Source: Iphione sp. A-MEVVRFRX5 (Eukaryota). Taken from it: 64,000 bases of DNA. The notes beneath the pieces are model-generated. The model was not told where the DNA came from. It saw nothing but the letters and a program-made list of their open reading frames with translations, and did not search any database. Shown piece by piece: positions 14,429 to 63,241 of the stretch. The stretch covers positions 33,170,001 to 33,234,000 of the forward strand of contig OZ320319.1 in the NCBI GenBank assembly GCA_976226885.1, read 5' to 3'. The translations under genes were made by a program, and so were the position numbers. Position 1 is the first letter of the stretch. Every line of letters starts with the position of its first letter.

Positions 14429-14602
14429 TATTGCCCTAGCCTTGGCGCCCCCTCAACACAAATAATAATACAGAGCTTGGAGGAACATGATATTTATTCA
14501 ATAGACACAATCCTTTAGTCTCTTGAGACTGATTCACAGATAAATTGAATAAATGCACACAACATAGGCAACATAGATGCAATTTCTTTGAAAGTAACAC
14601 CA
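14429..14602 (-). repeat. Split direct repeat B2 (174 bp), element 3' terminus
   Basis: Identical to B1, with element-strand AATAAA at 14498-14493. Confidence 0.95.
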
Positions 14603-14877
14603 TATTCATTCAATAGACACAATCTTTTAGTCTCTTGAGACTGATTCACAGATAAATTGAATAATTGCACATAACATAGGGAACATACATGTAATTTTTC
14701 AAGGTAACACCGTAAACCTCGTCAATCAGCAATCACATTGTTTAGTCTCTTGAGACTGAGCCATACCATTCATTCCATATTTCGTGAGACAACCGGAGGC
14801 TAATAGGCCTACCTTCTACCCTACAAGATCTGACAAACGATGTACATATCATCCACAATCGCGGTGGGAAGGGTGGG
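14603..14877 (-). repeat. A2-B2 spacer containing diverged partial copies of B
   Basis: 14603-14711 is a diverged copy of about 110 bp of B. A further tttagtctcttgagactga copy is at 14741-14759. Confidence 0.85.
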
Positions 14878-14999
14878 TAACATTCAAACGGCAACTGCCA
14901 CTGGCGCTCCACAGCCTCGCGCCTATGGCAGGCCAACACACCAGGGGGCGCCACCGTAAAGCAATACCTTGCAACCGCAGTGCCCTTCAGTGGCTGTAC
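14878..14999 (-). repeat. Split direct repeat A2 (122 bp)
   Basis: Identical to A1 and directly abuts B1 at 14999/15000, the presumed circle-junction sequence gctgtac|tattgccc. Confidence 0.95.
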
Positions 15000-15173
15000 T
15001 ATTGCCCTAGCCTTGGCGCCCCCTCAACACAAATAATAATACAGAGCTTGGAGGAACATGATATTTATTCAATAGACACAATCCTTTAGTCTCTTGAGAC
15101 TGATTCACAGATAAATTGAATAAATGCACACAACATAGGCAACATAGATGCAATTTCTTTGAAAGTAACACCA
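15000..15173 (-). repeat. Split direct repeat B1 (174 bp)
   Basis: Identical to 14429-14602. It begins 14 bp after the YR stop and has AATAAA on the element strand at 15069-15064. Confidence 0.95.
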
Positions 15174-15187
15174 AACCCATAGGGATA

Positions 15188-16141
15188 TTACGCCAAGTCG
15201 GGGTGCTTGGACATAAGCGTAGCGGCTTGAGCGGATGCTATTCTACGACTGGTGTACTGAGCCGAACCTGGCAAAGTCTTCCATGTCCCCTGTGCTAAAA
15301 TCTGAGAGTCAGACGCCCCCATGGCCTGCAGGGCCTGGGCACCGCCCCTTCTGAAGCTGTGCAGAGAGAAGTCATTAGGAGTGTACCCCAGGCTGGCCAA
15401 TGATTTTCTCAAAATCAAGGCGAGCTTATTCACTGGGAATGCTTGATGATAGACTGGATCCACAAACAAGGGCTGTGATGGGGAACGAGTTGGTGATATG
15501 TGTAGCATGGTTAGTAGGGCCCTTCTCGGGCATAGGGGTGAATCAATGGCAGGGAGAGTAATCACCTCCGGAGAGGATACCGAAATTGTCTTGGACCATT
15601 TAATTGTTACTGTGACTGAGTCCCTACCAATTATAACGTCCGACCTAGTCAGCTGAGTGCGTGGATTGAATCTCTGGGGAACCCGTGGGGCAACATTGCT
15701 CTGACGGACGAGACTGAAGAAAAGGAATATATACAGGGCATTTAATGTAATGCCAAGAGGGCCTAGGGGAGCTAGGTAGCTAACTAACTGAGATAGAATC
15801 TGGACTGTGATAGGGTGCTTCTGGGCTGGGACATGGCGGCATGCGAGCTTCAGGGCCTTGAGGGCAGTAGTAGCTCTATGGGTGTTAAACGCTTCTAGGG
15901 AATAGTCCTTCTGCTGGAGAACGTACTTAAGCGATGAAACATATTGGGCGACGACTTCAGGAGTATAGTCCAAAGATGCTAAATATTCTATATACAGGAG
16001 GACCTGATAATCCTGTAGAGACTCTATAGGAAACTCGAAGTGTAGGCAAAAGGCTATGCCTAGCTCGGACTGCTGGATACGACGAGTGTGTGTCGCAGGG
16101 GTGACGGACTGGGTCTGTCTGAGGATAGCCCGTTGTGCCAA
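15188..16141 (-). CDS. Tyrosine recombinase (phage-integrase fold) of the Ngaro element; the frame is open from 16165
   Basis: Catalytic set R (LVRQSN), K (KWSKT), HxxR (HSFRRGGA), W (GTW) and Y (AQY). The ORF-track start is a TTG; the first real ATG (LLTMLH) lies downstream of the catalytic R and K. Confidence 0.93.
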   Translation of the reverse strand: MAQRAILRQTQSVTPATHTRRIQQSELGIAFCLHFEFPIESLQDYQVLLYIEYLASLDYTPEVVAQYVSSLKYVLQQKDYSLEAFNTHRATTALKALKLACRHVPAQKHPITVQILSQLVSYLAPLGPLGITLNALYIFLFFSLVRQSNVAPRVPQRFNPRTQLTRSDVIIGRDSVTVTIKWSKTISVSSPEVITLPAIDSPLCPRRALLTMLHISPTRSPSQPLFVDPVYHQAFPVNKLALILRKSLASLGYTPNDFSLHSFRRGGAQALQAMGASDSQILAQGTWKTLPGSAQYTSRRIASAQAATLMSKHPDLA

Positions 16142-16155
16142 TTCAGTCAGAGGGG

Positions 16156-16192
16156 GACCTGTAAATTAGAATGATAATATACGTGAGGCTAT
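16156..16192 (-). promoter_or_regulatory. Candidate splice acceptor at the start of the YR frame (exon starts 16158)
   Basis: cctcacgtatattatcattctaatttacag|GT CCC: branch-like CTCAC/CTAAT, no intervening AG, and a CAG|G junction that is phase 1 in the YR frame. Confidence 0.6.
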
Positions 16193-18136
16193 TGCCTTAG
16201 TGGGGTATACCCTTTCAATTGTGGGATTCTGCCTAATGAATCTTGAGTGGATAGCCTTGTACTTGCTCGACACAGTGAGCCTGGACAAGGCGTCAGCGTA
16301 TATCATATCTGAACCAGGCTTGTGAGTAAATAGTAGATGAGTGCAATTGTTTGCTGCCCTCATCCAGACTGCCCTTGCAATTTTTGAAAGGAAGGGATCG
16401 CGAGTCTTCCCTGTTGACAAGACTGAGACTGTGGCGGAGTTATCACAAAAAACCTCTACTCTCATATTAGTGTGACGATCAGTTAGTAGTGTGTATATAG
16501 CCAGGGCTGTGTTAAAGGCTTCTAGCTGTGATATCGGGTAGGCGGACAATTCGAGCGGTACGGTGACAGAGTAATACATGGTACTGGAGTACGCCCCTAA
16601 GCCTGTAAATGAAGCATCACAATAGATCTCGTCAACCGTGGCAGGGGGAGGAATCAGAGTAACACCATTATAATTTGGCAGAAAATCAGTGAACCATTTC
16701 AGATCAAGCATAGATTGCTGGGACAATTGCACATAATTTTGCTTAGCGAAGACGGCATGCCTGTATTGATCAAGGAGTGTATTAATGAAAATCCTAACCG
16801 GGGGGGAGCATTTACCTACAAAATTAATAAGACCAAGTAGAGATTGCAAACTCTTGATATTTAATGTGCGCTTACTCATAACATCCTTTGCTGTGGTGGT
16901 CAGTTGAGAGATTTTTTCAACAGGTATGGACATCTTTCTTTCATCAGTTTGGAATCTGACCCCCAGCCATGTGATATCAGTGGTAGGGGGTACACATTTA
17001 TCGTGGGCCAGTTGCAGACCAAGTGATGACATTAATACCTTGGCATAATTATGTACTTGTGACAAATACTCGTGGTCGTGGTGTATGAAGATGTAGTCAT
17101 CTAAGTAAGCGTACGCTTGCACACGTGCAAATTTAGTCGTTATTTTGGCTAATATTGTTTCTGATATGGATTGAAGCAGGAGGGATGAAAACCTGGTGCC
17201 AAACGGGAGTGATAAGTCAGTGAAGTACATGTCATTTGAAATAAATGTTAATAGCGGCCAATCTAACGGGTCGACAGGAAAGTGCCTGTAGGCTCTTTTT
17301 AAGTCTAGTGAGGAAACATAAAGGGTTTGGTTTGACGACATTATGTAGTCTGAGAGGTTACATGTGGTTGGCAGCTGTACACGTGCGGGAACTGTGAAAT
17401 AATTGTGGTGGGGAATGTACATGTTTACCCCACTTCGACACAAATCCACTATTATTCTCCTGTCAGGAGACATCTTTTTTGGGCGAGTCATTATGGGACT
17501 AACACAGGAGTGTGGGTTGAATGGGTCCGAGTCGAATGGACCTGCTATGGCTCTGAAACCCATTTCAGTACATATATACTTATCTACATGCTTCTGCTCA
17601 GAATCCATGAGTGGGTACATATGAGTATCGGAGACCGGGATCGTACTGCCGGTGAATCCTAAAGGGAAACCGTATGTGATAAATTGGAGGATAATGAACT
17701 GGGCTGGGTCGTGAGGATCGAGGAGCTGCTGCCACTGTGGGATATTTAGGGGTGAGTGAAGCGGAATCATTGCTTCGAGGTGATTTGGGAGACCCGTTTG
17801 TCTTACCCTAGTATACGTGGTAGCCAAATGCTCCGGGAAACATTCAGTAGGTGTCGGCCAATTCATAATACGGTCAGCGAGGAGATTAAGGTGATTACGA
17901 CATACGACACCTCTTGGGGCATTGTAGAGGGGATTACATTGTTCAAACATACAAACATGACAATCGAGATAATCGTAACATAATGGGTGTGTGCAAGCAA
18001 ATAGTGCATGGTCTTTTGACGTCTGTGTGTTGGTGTTCACCACTCGGGGTCCTGCCTCGGTCGTCGGTATTCTTGTTGTGGTGTCTGTCTCCCTCCTGTC
18101 TGCGGCTGGGGTTGGGTGCGGCATCTCGTCCTGCAC
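16166..18136 (-). CDS. pol: Reverse transcriptase-RNase H (pol) of the Ngaro element; the frame is open from 18160
   Basis: RT motifs LDLKRAYRH, LPFG, YAYLDDY and WLGV. RNase H motifs IYCDAS, ISQLEAFN, VFCDNSATV and ADALSR. The pre-RT segment TGLPN...IP...W...YGFPLG is characteristic of Ngaro-like RTs. The ORF-track start is a GTG; the first ATG is at 18124. Confidence 0.95.
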   Translation of the reverse strand: MQDEMPHPTPAADRRETDTTTRIPTTEAGPRVVNTNTQTSKDHALFACTHPLCYDYLDCHVCMFEQCNPLYNAPRGVVCRNHLNLLADRIMNWPTPTECFPEHLATTYTRVRQTGLPNHLEAMIPLHSPLNIPQWQQLLDPHDPAQFIILQFITYGFPLGFTGSTIPVSDTHMYPLMDSEQKHVDKYICTEMGFRAIAGPFDSDPFNPHSCVSPIMTRPKKMSPDRRIIVDLCRSGVNMYIPHHNYFTVPARVQLPTTCNLSDYIMSSNQTLYVSSLDLKRAYRHFPVDPLDWPLLTFISNDMYFTDLSLPFGTRFSSLLLQSISETILAKITTKFARVQAYAYLDDYIFIHHDHEYLSQVHNYAKVLMSSLGLQLAHDKCVPPTTDITWLGVRFQTDERKMSIPVEKISQLTTTAKDVMSKRTLNIKSLQSLLGLINFVGKCSPPVRIFINTLLDQYRHAVFAKQNYVQLSQQSMLDLKWFTDFLPNYNGVTLIPPPATVDEIYCDASFTGLGAYSSTMYYSVTVPLELSAYPISQLEAFNTALAIYTLLTDRHTNMRVEVFCDNSATVSVLSTGKTRDPFLSKIARAVWMRAANNCTHLLFTHKPGSDMIYADALSRLTVSSKYKAIHSRFIRQNPTIERVYPTKAIASRILSF

Positions 18137-19008
18137 TGATCCACCTTGTGATCCATCTGCTTATTAAATAAGAGAAAACAGTATGGGCATATGTGGTAGA
18201 AATACACATCGTTAACAATATGTGGGGATTGTTCTGAGCACTTTGAATAGTTCCATTTAGGGCAGGGAACCATATTGTCCTTGGATGGGGGAGTGTACTT
18301 TGGTCGGTTGTTGCTGTTGTATGCTGATATGGACCTCTGCTTCAGGGTCTGTATCCTCTGGTGGTCATCCCACTTAAGTCTGTCGTTTGTGGTAGTAACC
18401 CACAGCTCATGGACCCAGTCCTTGATTGAGTCCCATCCTGTAGATTGAGTCTCCTCCGCCGCGTCTCTGACGTGGTCCAGCAGTAAGTTATACTCAGCTG
18501 GATATTCAATAGTGGGATCGAGGAGCAACGACATGGTGGCAGCTACATATTGTGGAAAGGTTGCTTTACGGACGTCAGTGCTGGTTGAATCCTTTAGGAT
18601 AAGGTAATTAGAAGGGCTTGGCTTGGCCAGTTGCTTACCGACGGCTTCCAGCGCTTTGGGGTACATTGTGGAGAATATTTCTTGAATCCTCCCAGCTTCT
18701 TGTGCTTTGATGGCTGTTGGTGCCGGGATGTTATCGCCTGGTGTTGGAGACGGTTCCTTTGTTGTGTCCCCTCCTTCAGCTGTTGTCGGTGACGGTTGGG
18801 CGTCTTGGCGGGAAGTAGACGCCTTGGCGGCTGCGGATCTTGTAACGACCGTTGGATTTGATTGTTTGGATTTTTCCTTTGTCTTCTGTTCAGGCTCCTT
18901 GGAGAATTGGTCAAATCGTTTCTCCAGGTCTTGGATCTTCTCCAGTAGTTTTTGGAGTATTCCCTCAGCGGAGGGGTCCTGATCAGTGCCTTCTTTAGTA
19001 TCGGGCAT
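18037..19008 (-). CDS. gag: Gag-like ORF1 (323 aa) of the Ngaro element
   Basis: ATG start. N-terminal coiled-coil-like ILQKLLEKIQDLEKRFDQF, then a low-complexity linker, then a C-terminal Cys/His cluster CPKWNYSKC...HICPYC...H...C typical of DIRS/Ngaro ORF1. It lies directly upstream of RT. Confidence 0.85.
   Translation of the reverse strand: MPDTKEGTDQDPSAEGILQKLLEKIQDLEKRFDQFSKEPEQKTKEKSKQSNPTVVTRSAAAKASTSRQDAQPSPTTAEGGDTTKEPSPTPGDNIPAPTAIKAQEAGRIQEIFSTMYPKALEAVGKQLAKPSPSNYLILKDSTSTDVRKATFPQYVAATMSLLLDPTIEYPAEYNLLLDHVRDAAEETQSTGWDSIKDWVHELWVTTTNDRLKWDDHQRIQTLKQRSISAYNSNNRPKYTPPSKDNMVPCPKWNYSKCSEQSPHIVNDVYFYHICPYCFLLFNKQMDHKVDQCRTRCRTQPQPQTGGRQTPQQEYRRPRQDPEW
18154..18185 (-). promoter_or_regulatory. 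Candidate splice acceptor at the start of the pol frame (exon starts 18156)
   Basis: catactgttttctcttatttaataagcag|AT GGA: a polypyrimidine tract, about 70 nt free of AG upstream, and a NAGNAG end. Both AG choices are phase 1 in the pol frame. Confidence 0.5.
18633..18641 (-). promoter_or_regulatory. Candidate 5' splice donor inside gag (TCG|GTAAGC, phase 1, intron starts 18638)
   Basis: Near-consensus donor at gag codon 124 (GTC G|GT AAG). Confidence 0.6.
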
Positions 19009-19085
19009 TGTTCGGTCTCCCGGTCAGCCTCGGTCAGTCGGTCAGCCTCGGACAACAGCAGGCAGGTGTAGACGTCTGCACTCGA

Positions 19086-19207
19086 TAACATTCAAACGGC
19101 AACTGCCACTGGCGCTCCACAGCCTCGCGCCTATGGCAGGCCAACACACCAGGGGGCGCCACCGTAAAGCAATACCTTGCAACCGCAGTGCCCTTCAGTG
19201 GCTGTAC
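19086..19207 (-). repeat. Split direct repeat A1 (122 bp)
   Basis: Identical to 14878-14999 (taacattcaaacgg...cagtggctgtac on the + strand). Confidence 0.95.
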
Positions 19208-21249
19208 CATTGTCGGACTCTCCCCGCTCTAACTGGCACTTTGCTAAACATTACAACAGTCCTACTTGCCATTTCTTTGTGGTTCCCTTTAGGGGTCTGT
19301 AGGGGCTCACGGATGCCGCCAGACGTTGCCTTGAAATCGAAGGGTAGCATGCCTTTACCAATAATCTCTCCAGTCAACCCTATGTGGCTTCTGACAATCA
19401 CTCCCACCATGCGGAACTCCTAATAAATTGATGAATGGGAGGCGAGGTGCTTCTGATGTTACTCCGGCGACTACTACAGGACCACATAGTAGCAAATAGT
19501 TCGCCCCGTATCCCCAAAGCCATGGGTAGACATCACAGGTTAAGGCTAGCTTTCATTTTCTGATCCCATCCCAAGCACACAGTCAAAGAGAATCGGATAT
19601 ATATGTATACTTCGGTATCCTCGAATAGCTTTGACTAGGGTGGATCTGTTCCGTACGTGCTCCGCCGCAAGGGAAAAATGTTCGCATGGTCGCACACATA
19701 CAGATCAAATGCATGCTTATTTCCTTTACATTTGCCATCAAAGCTGCTGCTTGCCATATGAAAAATAGAACCCGCAACGGACGAAGAACTGATATCACGA
19801 AGAACTCATATCTTTCTTGTCTTGTGAGTTTTTCGGAATGTATTAAAATAGAGACTTATACTATCTAACTTTTCCCCTTAGGTCCCCACCTTTCATATAT
19901 ATGATGTAAGTTTTCTCAAAGTCCAAATAGGAGAAGTGGTATTGTCTGGTTTGGAAACACGTGTTGTTTCCAGGATCCATTAACAATAGGGAAAATATAC
20001 GATCCTACCCACAACCCCTATTTTTTCAATTTGTTACCAGAAGCACAGATATTATTTTTAGGCCTAAGATGTAATTTCTGTCAGGCTACTGCTACCTTTA
20101 CTGCAAAGGCCATTACAATCAACTTGTGGCATTGCGTATGAATCATACAGTTGGACTCTCTCAACTGGTGAAGGCCAAATGCTTATTTTTTGGAGCACGG
20201 AGTTCTCTCTTCATACGCAAGACGATAAAAACGCCCCTCATTAAGAGGGGATGACCAAATCCAAACAGGCCGCACCTTCAAATAAAAGTGTACGAATTGA
20301 TTGTCAGTTGTACTTAAACAAGACATGTGAAACAGGATTGATTGGCAGGAGCAAGAATAAGAATGAAGGCAAAAAGAGGAACAACCATAAATTGAGGAAT
20401 TTAAATGGGAAGTCATGACTAGCCAATCATACAGGAAATAAAGTTTAAACATCACTGACTATTTTAAAAAAACACAAGCGCCTTTGGCCGCCGACTTGGG
20501 GGTTGACTCAAGGGGTCAAAGTACAGACTGCTAACTGTCCAAACGTCACCTTCTTTGATGGCATGGCTGGTACTACTTTTTACAACCCTCAGCCATGCTT
20601 GATTGCACATAGGTGTAGTAATACTATTCCAAGATGTCTGCCACCATGGCTGGACTACTTTCAGGCAACGTTTTATATAGGTAGTGTAATAACTTATAAA
20701 TTGTCATTTGTCCATCAGAATTTGAATATCCATTTCGCAAAACATAAAAGCTCATCTAAAACAATTAGGATCAAAACGATTCACTTTGGAACATTCCATA
20801 TGGAAACAATAATTACATGTACTAGAAATGATATTCATGTCCTTCTGTAAAAGGTGAATGACATTTACCGACGGTGCAGAATAACGGGACCTTGATGTAT
20901 CTTGACCCTTAGTAACCCATAGTGGACGGAAGACTAAGAAGTGTGGGGAATGTCACGCATGACACTGAGTGAATGGTGCCCATTTAGATGAAGCATGCAG
21001 CCGATGAGGAATGGGGAACAGACGCCATAACATTATTTATGTATATATATATGTGTATGTGTGTATATAAGAGTGCTTCGGTGAAGACTTTCGTCCCATG
21101 GAGCGTTCGCCCTACATGATACCTTCGAGCCTCCACCGTGGTCCCACACCGCTTTCTACCGCGGAGAGCACCGTGAGACCCACGAGAGAGGTGCAGGTGG
21201 GAAGAGTGGGGGTGGTAGAGATCAGAGGGGGACACTGGAGAGACTGCAG

Positions 21250-61964: not shown

Positions 61965-63241
61965 TTGACTCTGTGGACCACTCAATTCTATTAAGAAAGT
62001 TACCAAAATTTGGAGTAATGGGAAGGAATCTAGCTTGGGTTAAAAACTACTTAACAGACAGAAGGCAATTTGTTGCATGTAATGGTTTGTCATCAGCCAT
62101 GCTATCGGTTACCTGTGGGGTACCACAGGGATTGATACTCGGGCCATTGTTCTTCCTTCTTTTTATTAACGACCTTCCAGCTAAACTTAAGGATTACAAG
62201 ATATATATGTATGCTGATGATGTGGTGGTTTTGGTGGATGGTAAGAATGTGAATGAGCTTGAATGCAAAATTTTGAATGTTGGATATAGATTATTGAGGT
62301 ATATGCAAGAATCGAAAATTCTTATAAACTTCAACAAAACCAAGTGTCTGCATTTCAAATATATGAGATGTAATCCAACAAATACTCTTGGCCCCAAGGT
62401 CAAGTTAGGTAATGTAGACATAGATGTAGTTGAAGAAATAAAGTACTTAGGAGTTCTGTTAGACTCAAAATTGTCAATGTCACGTTCTAACAATTACACA
62501 ATAAGGAAGGTAATGAGTCGGACAACTTATTTTAGGAAAATTAGAAAATACCTGGACACCCAAAGTGCTATACAAATAGCTAGAACAACCATATTACCAG
62601 TCACGGAGTATGCTAGTGTAGTAAACACTAATATTCGATCAAGAGCCTTCATCAAGTTGATGAGGATTCGTTGTGCAATTGTTAATGTTGCCTATGGTTA
62701 TAATCGTCACACTCTGAATGAGATAATTGATGACTATGTACAATTCAGGAATAGGAGGTTGTTGTCGATTAGTTACGACTGGGCCCGTGAACTTGGTCTA
62801 AATAGGCTAACAAGACTAACAGGTAGATGAGGTATAGTCATACCAAAGCCAAAAAGGGAGTCATATAAGCACTCTATTGAATTTTTATGTAGTTCACTAT
62901 GGGCTGAAATGCCAGCAAGGATAACCAAGCTTTCGAAGAAAGAATACCTTTTGTATGTGGCAAAACTAGGTAGGGAATTCAGCCTTTCTTACGAAGTAAC
63001 ATGAGGAGATGTCATTGACTATTGTGTATTGTTTTAGGTATGTGAACAATGTAGTTACCACAACATCCGTGTGATTTATACCTGGTGCAGTGAGATAACG
63101 TCTCTCTATTATAGAGATATTGAGTTGCTTTTTGACACATGGGGTATATCCGCTGTGTACATTTCGACTGATTAGAAGCTGTCAACTAAATAATAGTAAG
63201 AAAGTGGACAAGGCATGGGGCATAGCCGCTGTCCTTGTCAC
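61965..63241 (+). mobile_element. 5'-truncated non-LTR retrotransposon (L2/CR1/Crack group): RT, C-terminus and 3' UTR
   Basis: ORF 61973-62830 has DSVDHSILL, W..NYL.DRRQFV, GVPQGLILGP, FINDLP, YADD and KYLGVLLD. After one TGA (62828-62830) the frame continues IPK...S....LW..MP to 63004. A 3' stem-loop GACAAGG...CCTTGTC lies at 63204-63241. Confidence 0.9.

Follow-up and report, generated by a model that had tools for sequence, protein, structure and literature searches.

Putative alternative splicing from one gag donor to two enzyme acceptors in a Ngaro tyrosine-recombinase retrotransposon

In avian sarcoma/leukosis virus, the gag AUG and the first codons of gag are spliced in frame to env to form the env mRNA. 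Foamy viruses produce Pol from a spliced subgenomic mRNA that uses a donor in the 5' leader and has its own AUG, and the product is not fused to Gag. Ngaro elements, which are tyrosine-recombinase (YR) retrotransposons of the DIRS order, are said to have been described by Goodwin and Poulter in 2004, and how YR retrotransposons express their downstream genes had been left open. We analyzed a 64,000-nucleotide (nt) stretch of the genome of Iphione sp. A-MEVVRFRX5 (assembly GCA_976226885.1, contig OZ320319.1, positions 33,170,001 to 33,234,000 of the forward strand), hereafter the window, in which positions 19212-14429 of the minus strand hold a complete Ngaro-type element with intact gag, reverse transcriptase (RT) and YR frames. 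We present evidence that a single splice donor in gag may be joined to either of two acceptors, one opening the RT/RNase H frame and the other the YR frame.

The window element shares with described Ngaro elements a gag-like open reading frame (ORF), an RT/RNase H ORF, a YR ORF and split direct repeats in the order A1...B1A2B2. It differs from those descriptions in one respect: none of the accessible papers mentions splicing or says how pol or YR is expressed, whereas here a conserved acceptor would explain the variable frame of YR. Fungal Ngaro elements have been surveyed (Muszewska et al. 2013; PMC3783388), and published surveys describe a YR ORF that is overlapping, frameshifted or start-less, with nothing further on its expression (PMC3783388). 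No natural splicing in Ngaro or DIRS elements is described in the searchable literature, and prior mention in Goodwin and Poulter 2004 or Poulter and Butler 2015 is possible. The DIRS-1 paper was set aside as a precedent for splicing, because its intron is an artificial marker.

Among well-studied systems, the avian sarcoma/leukosis virus env message appears to be a closer analogue than foamy virus Pol. In the avian virus, as proposed here, a coding gag leader is spliced in frame to a downstream gene without a usable start, and the unspliced RNA is both the genome and the Gag message. The leader of the window element would be longer (123 residues with predicted helices versus six codons), and the downstream products are enzymes, RT and recombinase, in place of an envelope protein, with one donor serving two enzyme exons. 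A preliminary description of the element, made from the letters of the window, had drawn the parallel with foamy viruses. That parallel is loose: it holds insofar as Pol would come from a spliced message and not from Gag-Pol frameshifting or readthrough, but the separate AUG, the unfused Pol and the leader donor of foamy viruses have no counterpart here. The proposed expression belongs to a known kind, in which retroelement genes are read from spliced subgenomic messages with a gag leader; what would be new is one donor with two enzyme acceptors in a Ngaro element.

We propose that one primary transcript gives rise to three proteins by alternative splicing. Unspliced RNA would serve as genomic RNA and as the message for Gag (323 amino acids, aa). 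A single phase-1 donor (18639), which lies in a conserved Gly-Lys codon pair of gag, would be joined to one of two acceptors. Splicing to acceptor 1 (18156) would shift translation to the -1 frame and fuse Gag residues 1-123 to RT/RNase H, for a product of 786 aa; splicing to acceptor 2 (16158) would fuse the same residues to the recombinase, for a product of 446 aa. The preliminary description had put both junctions in frame with the one donor and predicted products of 323, 786 and 446 codons, and these figures hold. We regard the full three-way scheme as probable for the window's clade and the Gag-YR splice as highly probable. The coding and splice-site features of the element are as follows; a slash marks a predicted exon-intron boundary.

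18037-19008, minus strand: gag ORF encoding 323 aa, to be translated from unspliced RNA; intact in 17 of the related copies studied
18639-19008, minus strand: coding exon 1, the shared leader, with Gag codons 1-123 and the first base of Gly codon 124
18632-18639, minus strand: predicted 5' splice donor G/GTAAGCA, GT at 18638-18637, phase 1, invariant in 28 of 29 copies
18163-18180, minus strand: T-rich tract ahead of acceptor 1, inside the region coding for the zinc knuckle
18157-18159, minus strand: predicted acceptor 1, CAG/, exon from 18156; the CAG is invariant in 29 of 29 copies
16166-18156, minus strand: pol exon with the RT/RNase H frame, 663 codons plus TAA (16168-16166), overlapping the 3' end of gag in the -1 frame
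16159-16168, minus strand: pol stop TAA, then TTTACAG/, predicted acceptor 2, AG at 16160-16159, exon from 16158
15188-16158, minus strand: YR exon, 323 codons from the junction, TAA at 15190-15188

To compare these sites among related elements, we searched the host genome (1.18 Gb) at the DNA level. The search returned three close relatives, L002 (96%), L003 (83%) and L004 (77%), and many sister-family copies with about 70% identity in gag. Each of the close relatives is damaged: the pol of L002 is frameshifted, L003 lacks most of YR and its gag is broken, and the 5' part of gag is broken in L004. Many sister-family copies have the gag, pol and YR frames all intact. Twenty further full-length regions from the host genome were added, and the families compared share roughly 50-70% protein identity.

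The strongest single result of this comparison is that the YR frame shifts relative to pol yet stays in phase with the gag donor. All copies keep a pol stop T(A/G)A followed by (t)tt[acg]cag. In the window subfamily, 7 nt follow the stop (tttacag or attacag) and YR shares the frame of pol; the remaining families of the clade all have 6 nt there (ttacag, ttccag or ttgcag), which puts YR in the pol -1 frame. Every intact copy nonetheless has its YR frame in phase with a phase-1 donor joined at the acceptor 2 AG, with exactly 323 codons, and intact copies carry the catalytic Arg at YR codon 152. Because the 1-nt indel falls inside the proposed intron, it would be harmless under splicing, whereas readthrough would fail in one group of families and frameshifting in the other. 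The indel thereby rules out readthrough or frameshifting as the general route to YR.

In the window copy, acceptor 2 reads TTTACAG/GT where the YR frame opens, as first described, and the junction 18639 to 16158 would remove a 2480-nt intron and create GGT (G+GT, followed by CCC) in the YR frame. The description had also stated that this frame has no ATG before its catalytic Arg and Lys; the first Met is indeed residue 220, past the Arg (about 152-154) and the Lys (about 189-190). It had omitted that YR shares the pol frame here with a single TAA between them, which makes readthrough an obvious rival. Across copies, the stop may be TAA or TGA, the base after it varies, and pol and YR are in frame in the window subfamily alone. 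Upstream of the acceptor 2 AG, the YR frame lacks an ATG in every copy, and the position of the first YR-frame Met is not conserved, ranging from codon 6 to codon 218. Within each element, the T content of the 18 nt ahead of this AG ranks at about the 99th percentile, and the AG-free zone ahead of it spans 21-50 nt.

The donor noted in the preliminary description, a near-consensus TCG/GTAAGC after the first base of Gly codon 124, was confirmed with exon 1 ending at 18639. The sequence GGTAAGCA is identical in 28 of the 29 copies, the exception carrying a 15-nt deletion, and all four synonymous forms of the Val codon that precedes the donor are in use among the copies. When 24 copies of gag were aligned, the longest near-invariant runs were GGTAAGCA (18639-18632) and CAGATGGA (18159-18152), each of 8 nt, and the next longest was 5 nt. 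We also examined 18 intact gag genes at 112 columns in which the amino acid is both conserved and degenerate. The codon is invariant at five of these columns, Ser87 (TCT), Gly124 (GGT), Lys125 (AAG), Gln284 (CAG) and His287 (CAC), with GGT124 and AAG125 each present in 18 of 18 genes. Three of the five (124, 125 and 284) are the predicted splice-site codons, more than expected by chance (hypergeometric estimate, about 4e-5), and the CAC of His287 is accounted for by dual coding, since the third base of this codon doubles as a first codon position of pol. A pattern made of the exon-1 end and the donor, allowing up to 2 mismatches, had 164 matches in the genome, compared with 0 for a reversed control. 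A GTAAG donor can form six contiguous base pairs with U1.

The element combines a consensus donor with acceptors at the positions and phases that open the downstream frames. Position and phase are conserved in related copies beyond what the codons need, a check that the preliminary description had proposed; of the refuting conditions it named, those that were examined left the model standing within the element's clade. As judged from these alignments, purifying selection acts at the nucleotide level, across families, on the sites, on their phase and on the 3' splice-site features around them.

A further conserved sequence, CGTCTNCAACAC, lies about 110 nt upstream of the donor at gag codons 86-89 (window 18741-18752, minus strand). 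It is kept in 24 copies and is invariant at synonymous sites, including the six-fold degenerate Ser codon TCT (18 of 18), although the disordered part of Gag around it varies greatly. The motif may act as an exonic splicing enhancer or as some other RNA signal.

The pol frame is the -1 frame of gag. Its opening at 18160 follows a TAA (18163-18161), and it overlaps gag by 117 nt up to the gag stop (18039-18037). In keeping with the preliminary description, this short overlap holds no X_XXY_YYZ slippery heptamer in any of 23 copies, the window copy and 22 relatives; a conserved frameshift signal was sought in the same 23 copies without success, and no conserved 7-nt motif was found in the overlap apart from acceptor 1 itself. 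Acceptor 1 was described as a tandem NAGNAG site at the point where the pol frame opens. Its position is upheld, with the exon starting at 18156 and the junction 18639 to 18156 giving GAT (G+AT, followed by GGA) in the pol frame. The tandem arrangement is not general: the AAG at 18162-18160 (AAG CAG/ATG) is specific to this subfamily, and most relatives read AAA CAG.

Several other features of acceptor 1 are shared among the copies. A stop located 3-6 nt before its AG closes the pol frame in 22 of 23 copies (51 nt before it in L044), and the frame is open from acceptor 1 into RT in intact copies. The donor and acceptor 1 are 482 nt apart in 22 of 23 copies, despite differences in the length of the N-terminal part of gag. 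The T content of the tract is at or near the 99th percentile among 18-nt windows (median 0.992; 16 copies). Coding cannot explain this tract, because the four residues encoded after the second zinc-knuckle Cys vary (FLLF, FHVS, FLSI, VVVF and others), and their codons are always T-rich. In copies without the tandem AAG, the AG-free zone ahead of acceptor 1 extends over 53-120 nt; the background median is 10 nt, and just 1.2% of background AG-free intervals reach 72 nt. The first ATG in the pol frame is unconserved, falling between codon 7 and codon 306. None of the relatives checked has an ATG at the head of YR or of pol, and neither gene has a start codon of its own.

We then considered YR elements outside the host genome. 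A word-indexed protein search with the window YR gave only six distant matches, and an exhaustive search with representatives gave thousands of relatives. A few of these carry long N-terminal extensions, among them XP_019639177.1 (482 aa; Branchiostoma belcheri LOC109481127) and XP_078660129.1 (540 aa; B. floridae x B. belcheri), which are RefSeq two-exon models at loci L054 and L055. Exon 1 of these amphioxus models is the start of a gag-like ORF and ends in a Gly-Lys pair, in phase 1, at AAG/GTAAGG or CAG/GTAAGA. The model introns of 2.8-2.9 kb contain the remainder of gag and RT/RNase H, and exon 2 begins directly after TTTTACAG or CTCACAG at the head of YR. L054 carries Ngaro A1...B1A2B2 repeats. 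An "integrase/recombinase xerD homolog" of Mytilus galloprovincialis has the same two-exon build, with RT in the intron, a donor TTTAG/GTATAA after the first base of a GGT Gly codon and a YR exon that follows TATATAG. The amphioxus and Mytilus models thus resemble the window element in joining gag exon 1 (G/GTAAG or G/GTATA, Gly codon, phase 1) to a YR exon, and differ in being annotated as uncharacterized host genes and in having a YR with about 25-30% identity to that of the window element.

Five metagenome and assembly contigs provided additional lineages, L052, L053 and L057-L059. L053, L057, L058 and L059 have G/GTAAR in a Gly-Lys pair, in phase 1, the donor of L058 (GTAAAC) being weak. 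In all five, including L052, whose gag showed no donor-like site, a YAG acceptor of compatible phase precedes a YR that lacks a start. These lineages share the architecture, the Gly-codon donor (L052 excepted) and the phase-matched YR acceptor with the window's clade, and the two groups are reversed with respect to pol, one having a recoding signal at gag/pol and no acceptor 1 and the other acceptor 1 and no recoding signal. L052, L053, L057, L058 and L059, whose pol is in the -1 frame, carry the canonical slippery heptamer A_AAA_AAC 10-25 nt ahead of the gag stop and in frame with gag. In the amphioxus elements (L054:8997-9005 and L055:9252-9260), UGA-CUA, known as a leaky stop context, separates gag from a pol in the same frame, and L055 pol would need readthrough or splicing because its first Met is codon 187. 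A T-rich tract with CAG at the place homologous to acceptor 1 is absent from L052-L055 and L057-L059. Because these other Ngaro lineages use A_AAA_AAC frameshifting or UGA-CUA readthrough, the pol acceptor would be specific to the window's clade. The Gag-YR splice looks ancient and general, and the Gag-Pol splice looks like a replacement, within this clade, for ribosomal frameshifting or readthrough. We lean toward the broader proposal that the recombinase of Ngaro elements comes, across animal phyla, from a spliced message with an in-frame Gag leader and from no other, an ancient arrangement marked by a Gly-codon phase-1 donor, to which one clade would have added a second 3' splice site in exchange for recoding.

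A Gigantopelta aegis gene model, P0291 (L061), was not used as support, as it is pieced together from RT fragments and the YR of a decayed copy. Its annotation as a 533-aa "uncharacterized protein" with four exons, on a decayed YR retroelement, is a case of transposon remains called a host gene.

The junctions in the window's clade are predictions from sequence comparison, and those of amphioxus and Mytilus are taken from annotated gene models. A number of observations weigh against the splicing scheme. At acceptor 1, the 6 nt between the T-rich tract and the CAG are purine-rich, and CAG is the preferred Gln codon elsewhere in gag (10-17 of 18 copies). Because CAG is the commoner codon, the synonymous evidence for acceptor 1 by itself is modest; the case for this site would lie in its combined features, with the invariant CAG weak on its own, and the pol acceptor is less securely supported than the YR acceptor. 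In addition, processed (intron-less) copies were not found in the host genome. Degenerate patterns for the Gag-Pol junction had 0 genomic matches at 0 and at 2 mismatches, and the sole match to the subfamily Gag-YR junction pattern (L051) was rejected as unrelated. Gag-YR retrocopies of the larger families were probed only indirectly, through exon-1 ends: among 77 perfect exon-1 ends in the genome, 75 are followed by an intact donor and two by decayed donors (L063 and L064). Absence of processed copies would be expected if the spliced RNAs escape reverse transcription, as with retroviral subgenomic messages.

These points bear on three other explanations. It is possible, though we think it unlikely, that only the Gag-YR splice is real and that pol is translated in another way, such as initiation at a non-AUG codon, reinitiation or a non-canonical -1 frameshift within the 117 nt of overlap, in which case the conservation of CAG/ATGGA would reflect protein and dual-coding constraint. 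Acceptor 1 does lie within the conserved zinc-knuckle motif NKQMDHK, the presence of CAG in 18 of 18 genes is mildly unusual at most given its frequency elsewhere in gag, pol depends on translational recoding in every other Ngaro lineage examined, and no Gag-Pol splice occurs among the gene models seen. However, A_AAA_AAC is present in five of five other lineages with pol in the -1 frame and in 0 of 23 copies here, the overlap has no conserved 7-nt motif besides the acceptor, and pol has no conserved ATG. Coding also fails to explain the T-rich tract, the 53-120-nt AG-free zone or the fixed 482-nt spacing.

A scheme with no splicing at all, in which YR is made by TAA readthrough from pol, pol by an unrecognized frameshift, and the GT and AG are kept for some other reason, strikes us as very improbable. 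It would suit the window copy and L002-L004, where YR follows in the pol frame after a single stop (TAA or TGA), but in other families, because of the 1-nt difference, YR falls into the pol -1 frame and no slippery site is present, and the stop type and its 3' context vary. Moreover, in L052, L053 and L062 the YR exon is separated from the end of pol coding by about 90 to 200 nt or more, and the donor is conserved at synonymous sites across phyla. We give equally little credence to the idea that the motifs hitch-hike or have another RNA role, such as packaging, dimerization or a small-RNA target, with the downstream ORFs expressed in some other way. The invariance of CGTCTNCAACAC in exon 1, which has no obvious splice role, does indicate that nucleotide-level constraints besides splice sites act on the element RNA. 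Against such a role for the donor and acceptors, the motifs fit the splice consensus (a GTAAG donor, and YAG after a T-rich tract and an AG-free zone), they have the exact positions and phases needed to open two start-less frames, and homologous sites are used by the annotated models in other species.

The remaining features agree with assignment of the element to the Ngaro group. Its split direct repeats (A1 ... B1 A2 B2) are arranged as follows.

19086-19212, minus strand: A1 terminal repeat at the 5' end of the element, a 127-nt direct repeat with 99% identity to A2
15000-15180, minus strand: B1 repeat, 181 nt, 98% identity to B2
14878-15004, minus strand: A2 repeat, 99% identity to A1
14429-14609, minus strand: B2 repeat at the 3' end of the element, 98% identity to B1

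A2 and B2 are about 270 nt apart, and not adjacent, because a 112-nt unit is tandemly duplicated (2.0-2.3 copies) at window 14490-14759, in and beside B2. A second tandem repeat, an 18-nt unit present 2.2 times, lies in the 5' leader directly upstream of the gag ATG (window 19012-19051).

The central ORF (window 16166-18160) contains an RT domain (Pfam RVT_1, E 1.2e-14). In the 664-aa pol frame Pfam detected RVT_1 and no other domain; the absence of a methyltransferase separates Ngaro from DIRS1 and PAT, although absence as judged by Pfam is weak evidence. A Cys/His-rich stretch, C-x4-C-x6-C-x2-C-x4-C, is found upstream of RT at pol residues of about 55-75 (window 17950-18010, minus strand). 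As a single sequence, the window YR had no direct Pfam or PDB match, but a profile of this YR and 18 relatives matched Cre with an E value of 2.6e-11 and also matched XerH/XerA. The enzyme has the R...K...HxxR...Y residues of a tyrosine recombinase instead of a DDE integrase: R152, K190, H267 and R270 are invariant and Y301 is nearly so in the window YR and its relatives. The Cre match starts at profile position 13, which places the Cre-like fold 13 residues past the proposed YR junction.

Gag has a helix at its N-terminus, then a disordered linker, a helical domain and a zinc knuckle of the form C-X2-C-X9-H-X4-C. An AlphaFold2 model based on an 18-sequence alignment has helices at residues 14-36 and 97-115, with low confidence (mean pLDDT 52), and complex prediction with two copies of Gag 1-123 scored 0.02, which speaks neither for nor against pairing. 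The shared leader may do more than supply an AUG, and its 123 residues could load both enzymes into Gag particles, as the preliminary description had suggested. The C-terminal motif R-x-R-Q-D-P-E/D-W and the stop (window 18040-18060, minus strand) are almost invariant in 18 copies despite the gag/pol overlap. Elsewhere in the window, a 285-aa ORF on the plus strand (61973-62830; Pfam RVT_1, E 3.7e-18) is a fragment of a different retroelement.

A gag donor with phase-matched acceptors would account at once for the overlapping, frameshifted or start-less YR ORFs of Ngaro elements. If the scheme is correct, the choice of splice site would set the Gag:Pol:YR ratio in the window's clade, by alternative splicing and not by translational recoding. 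The two-exon genes annotated as "uncharacterized" or "xerD homolog" in amphioxus and mussel genomes would be transposon messages, and ORF-based transposon annotation would mis-call Ngaro recombinases as start-less or truncated. Frameshifting, readthrough and splicing would then be three interchangeable gag-pol strategies within one transposon group, and the ability of such a group to switch its Pol strategy would bear on how retroelement expression evolves.

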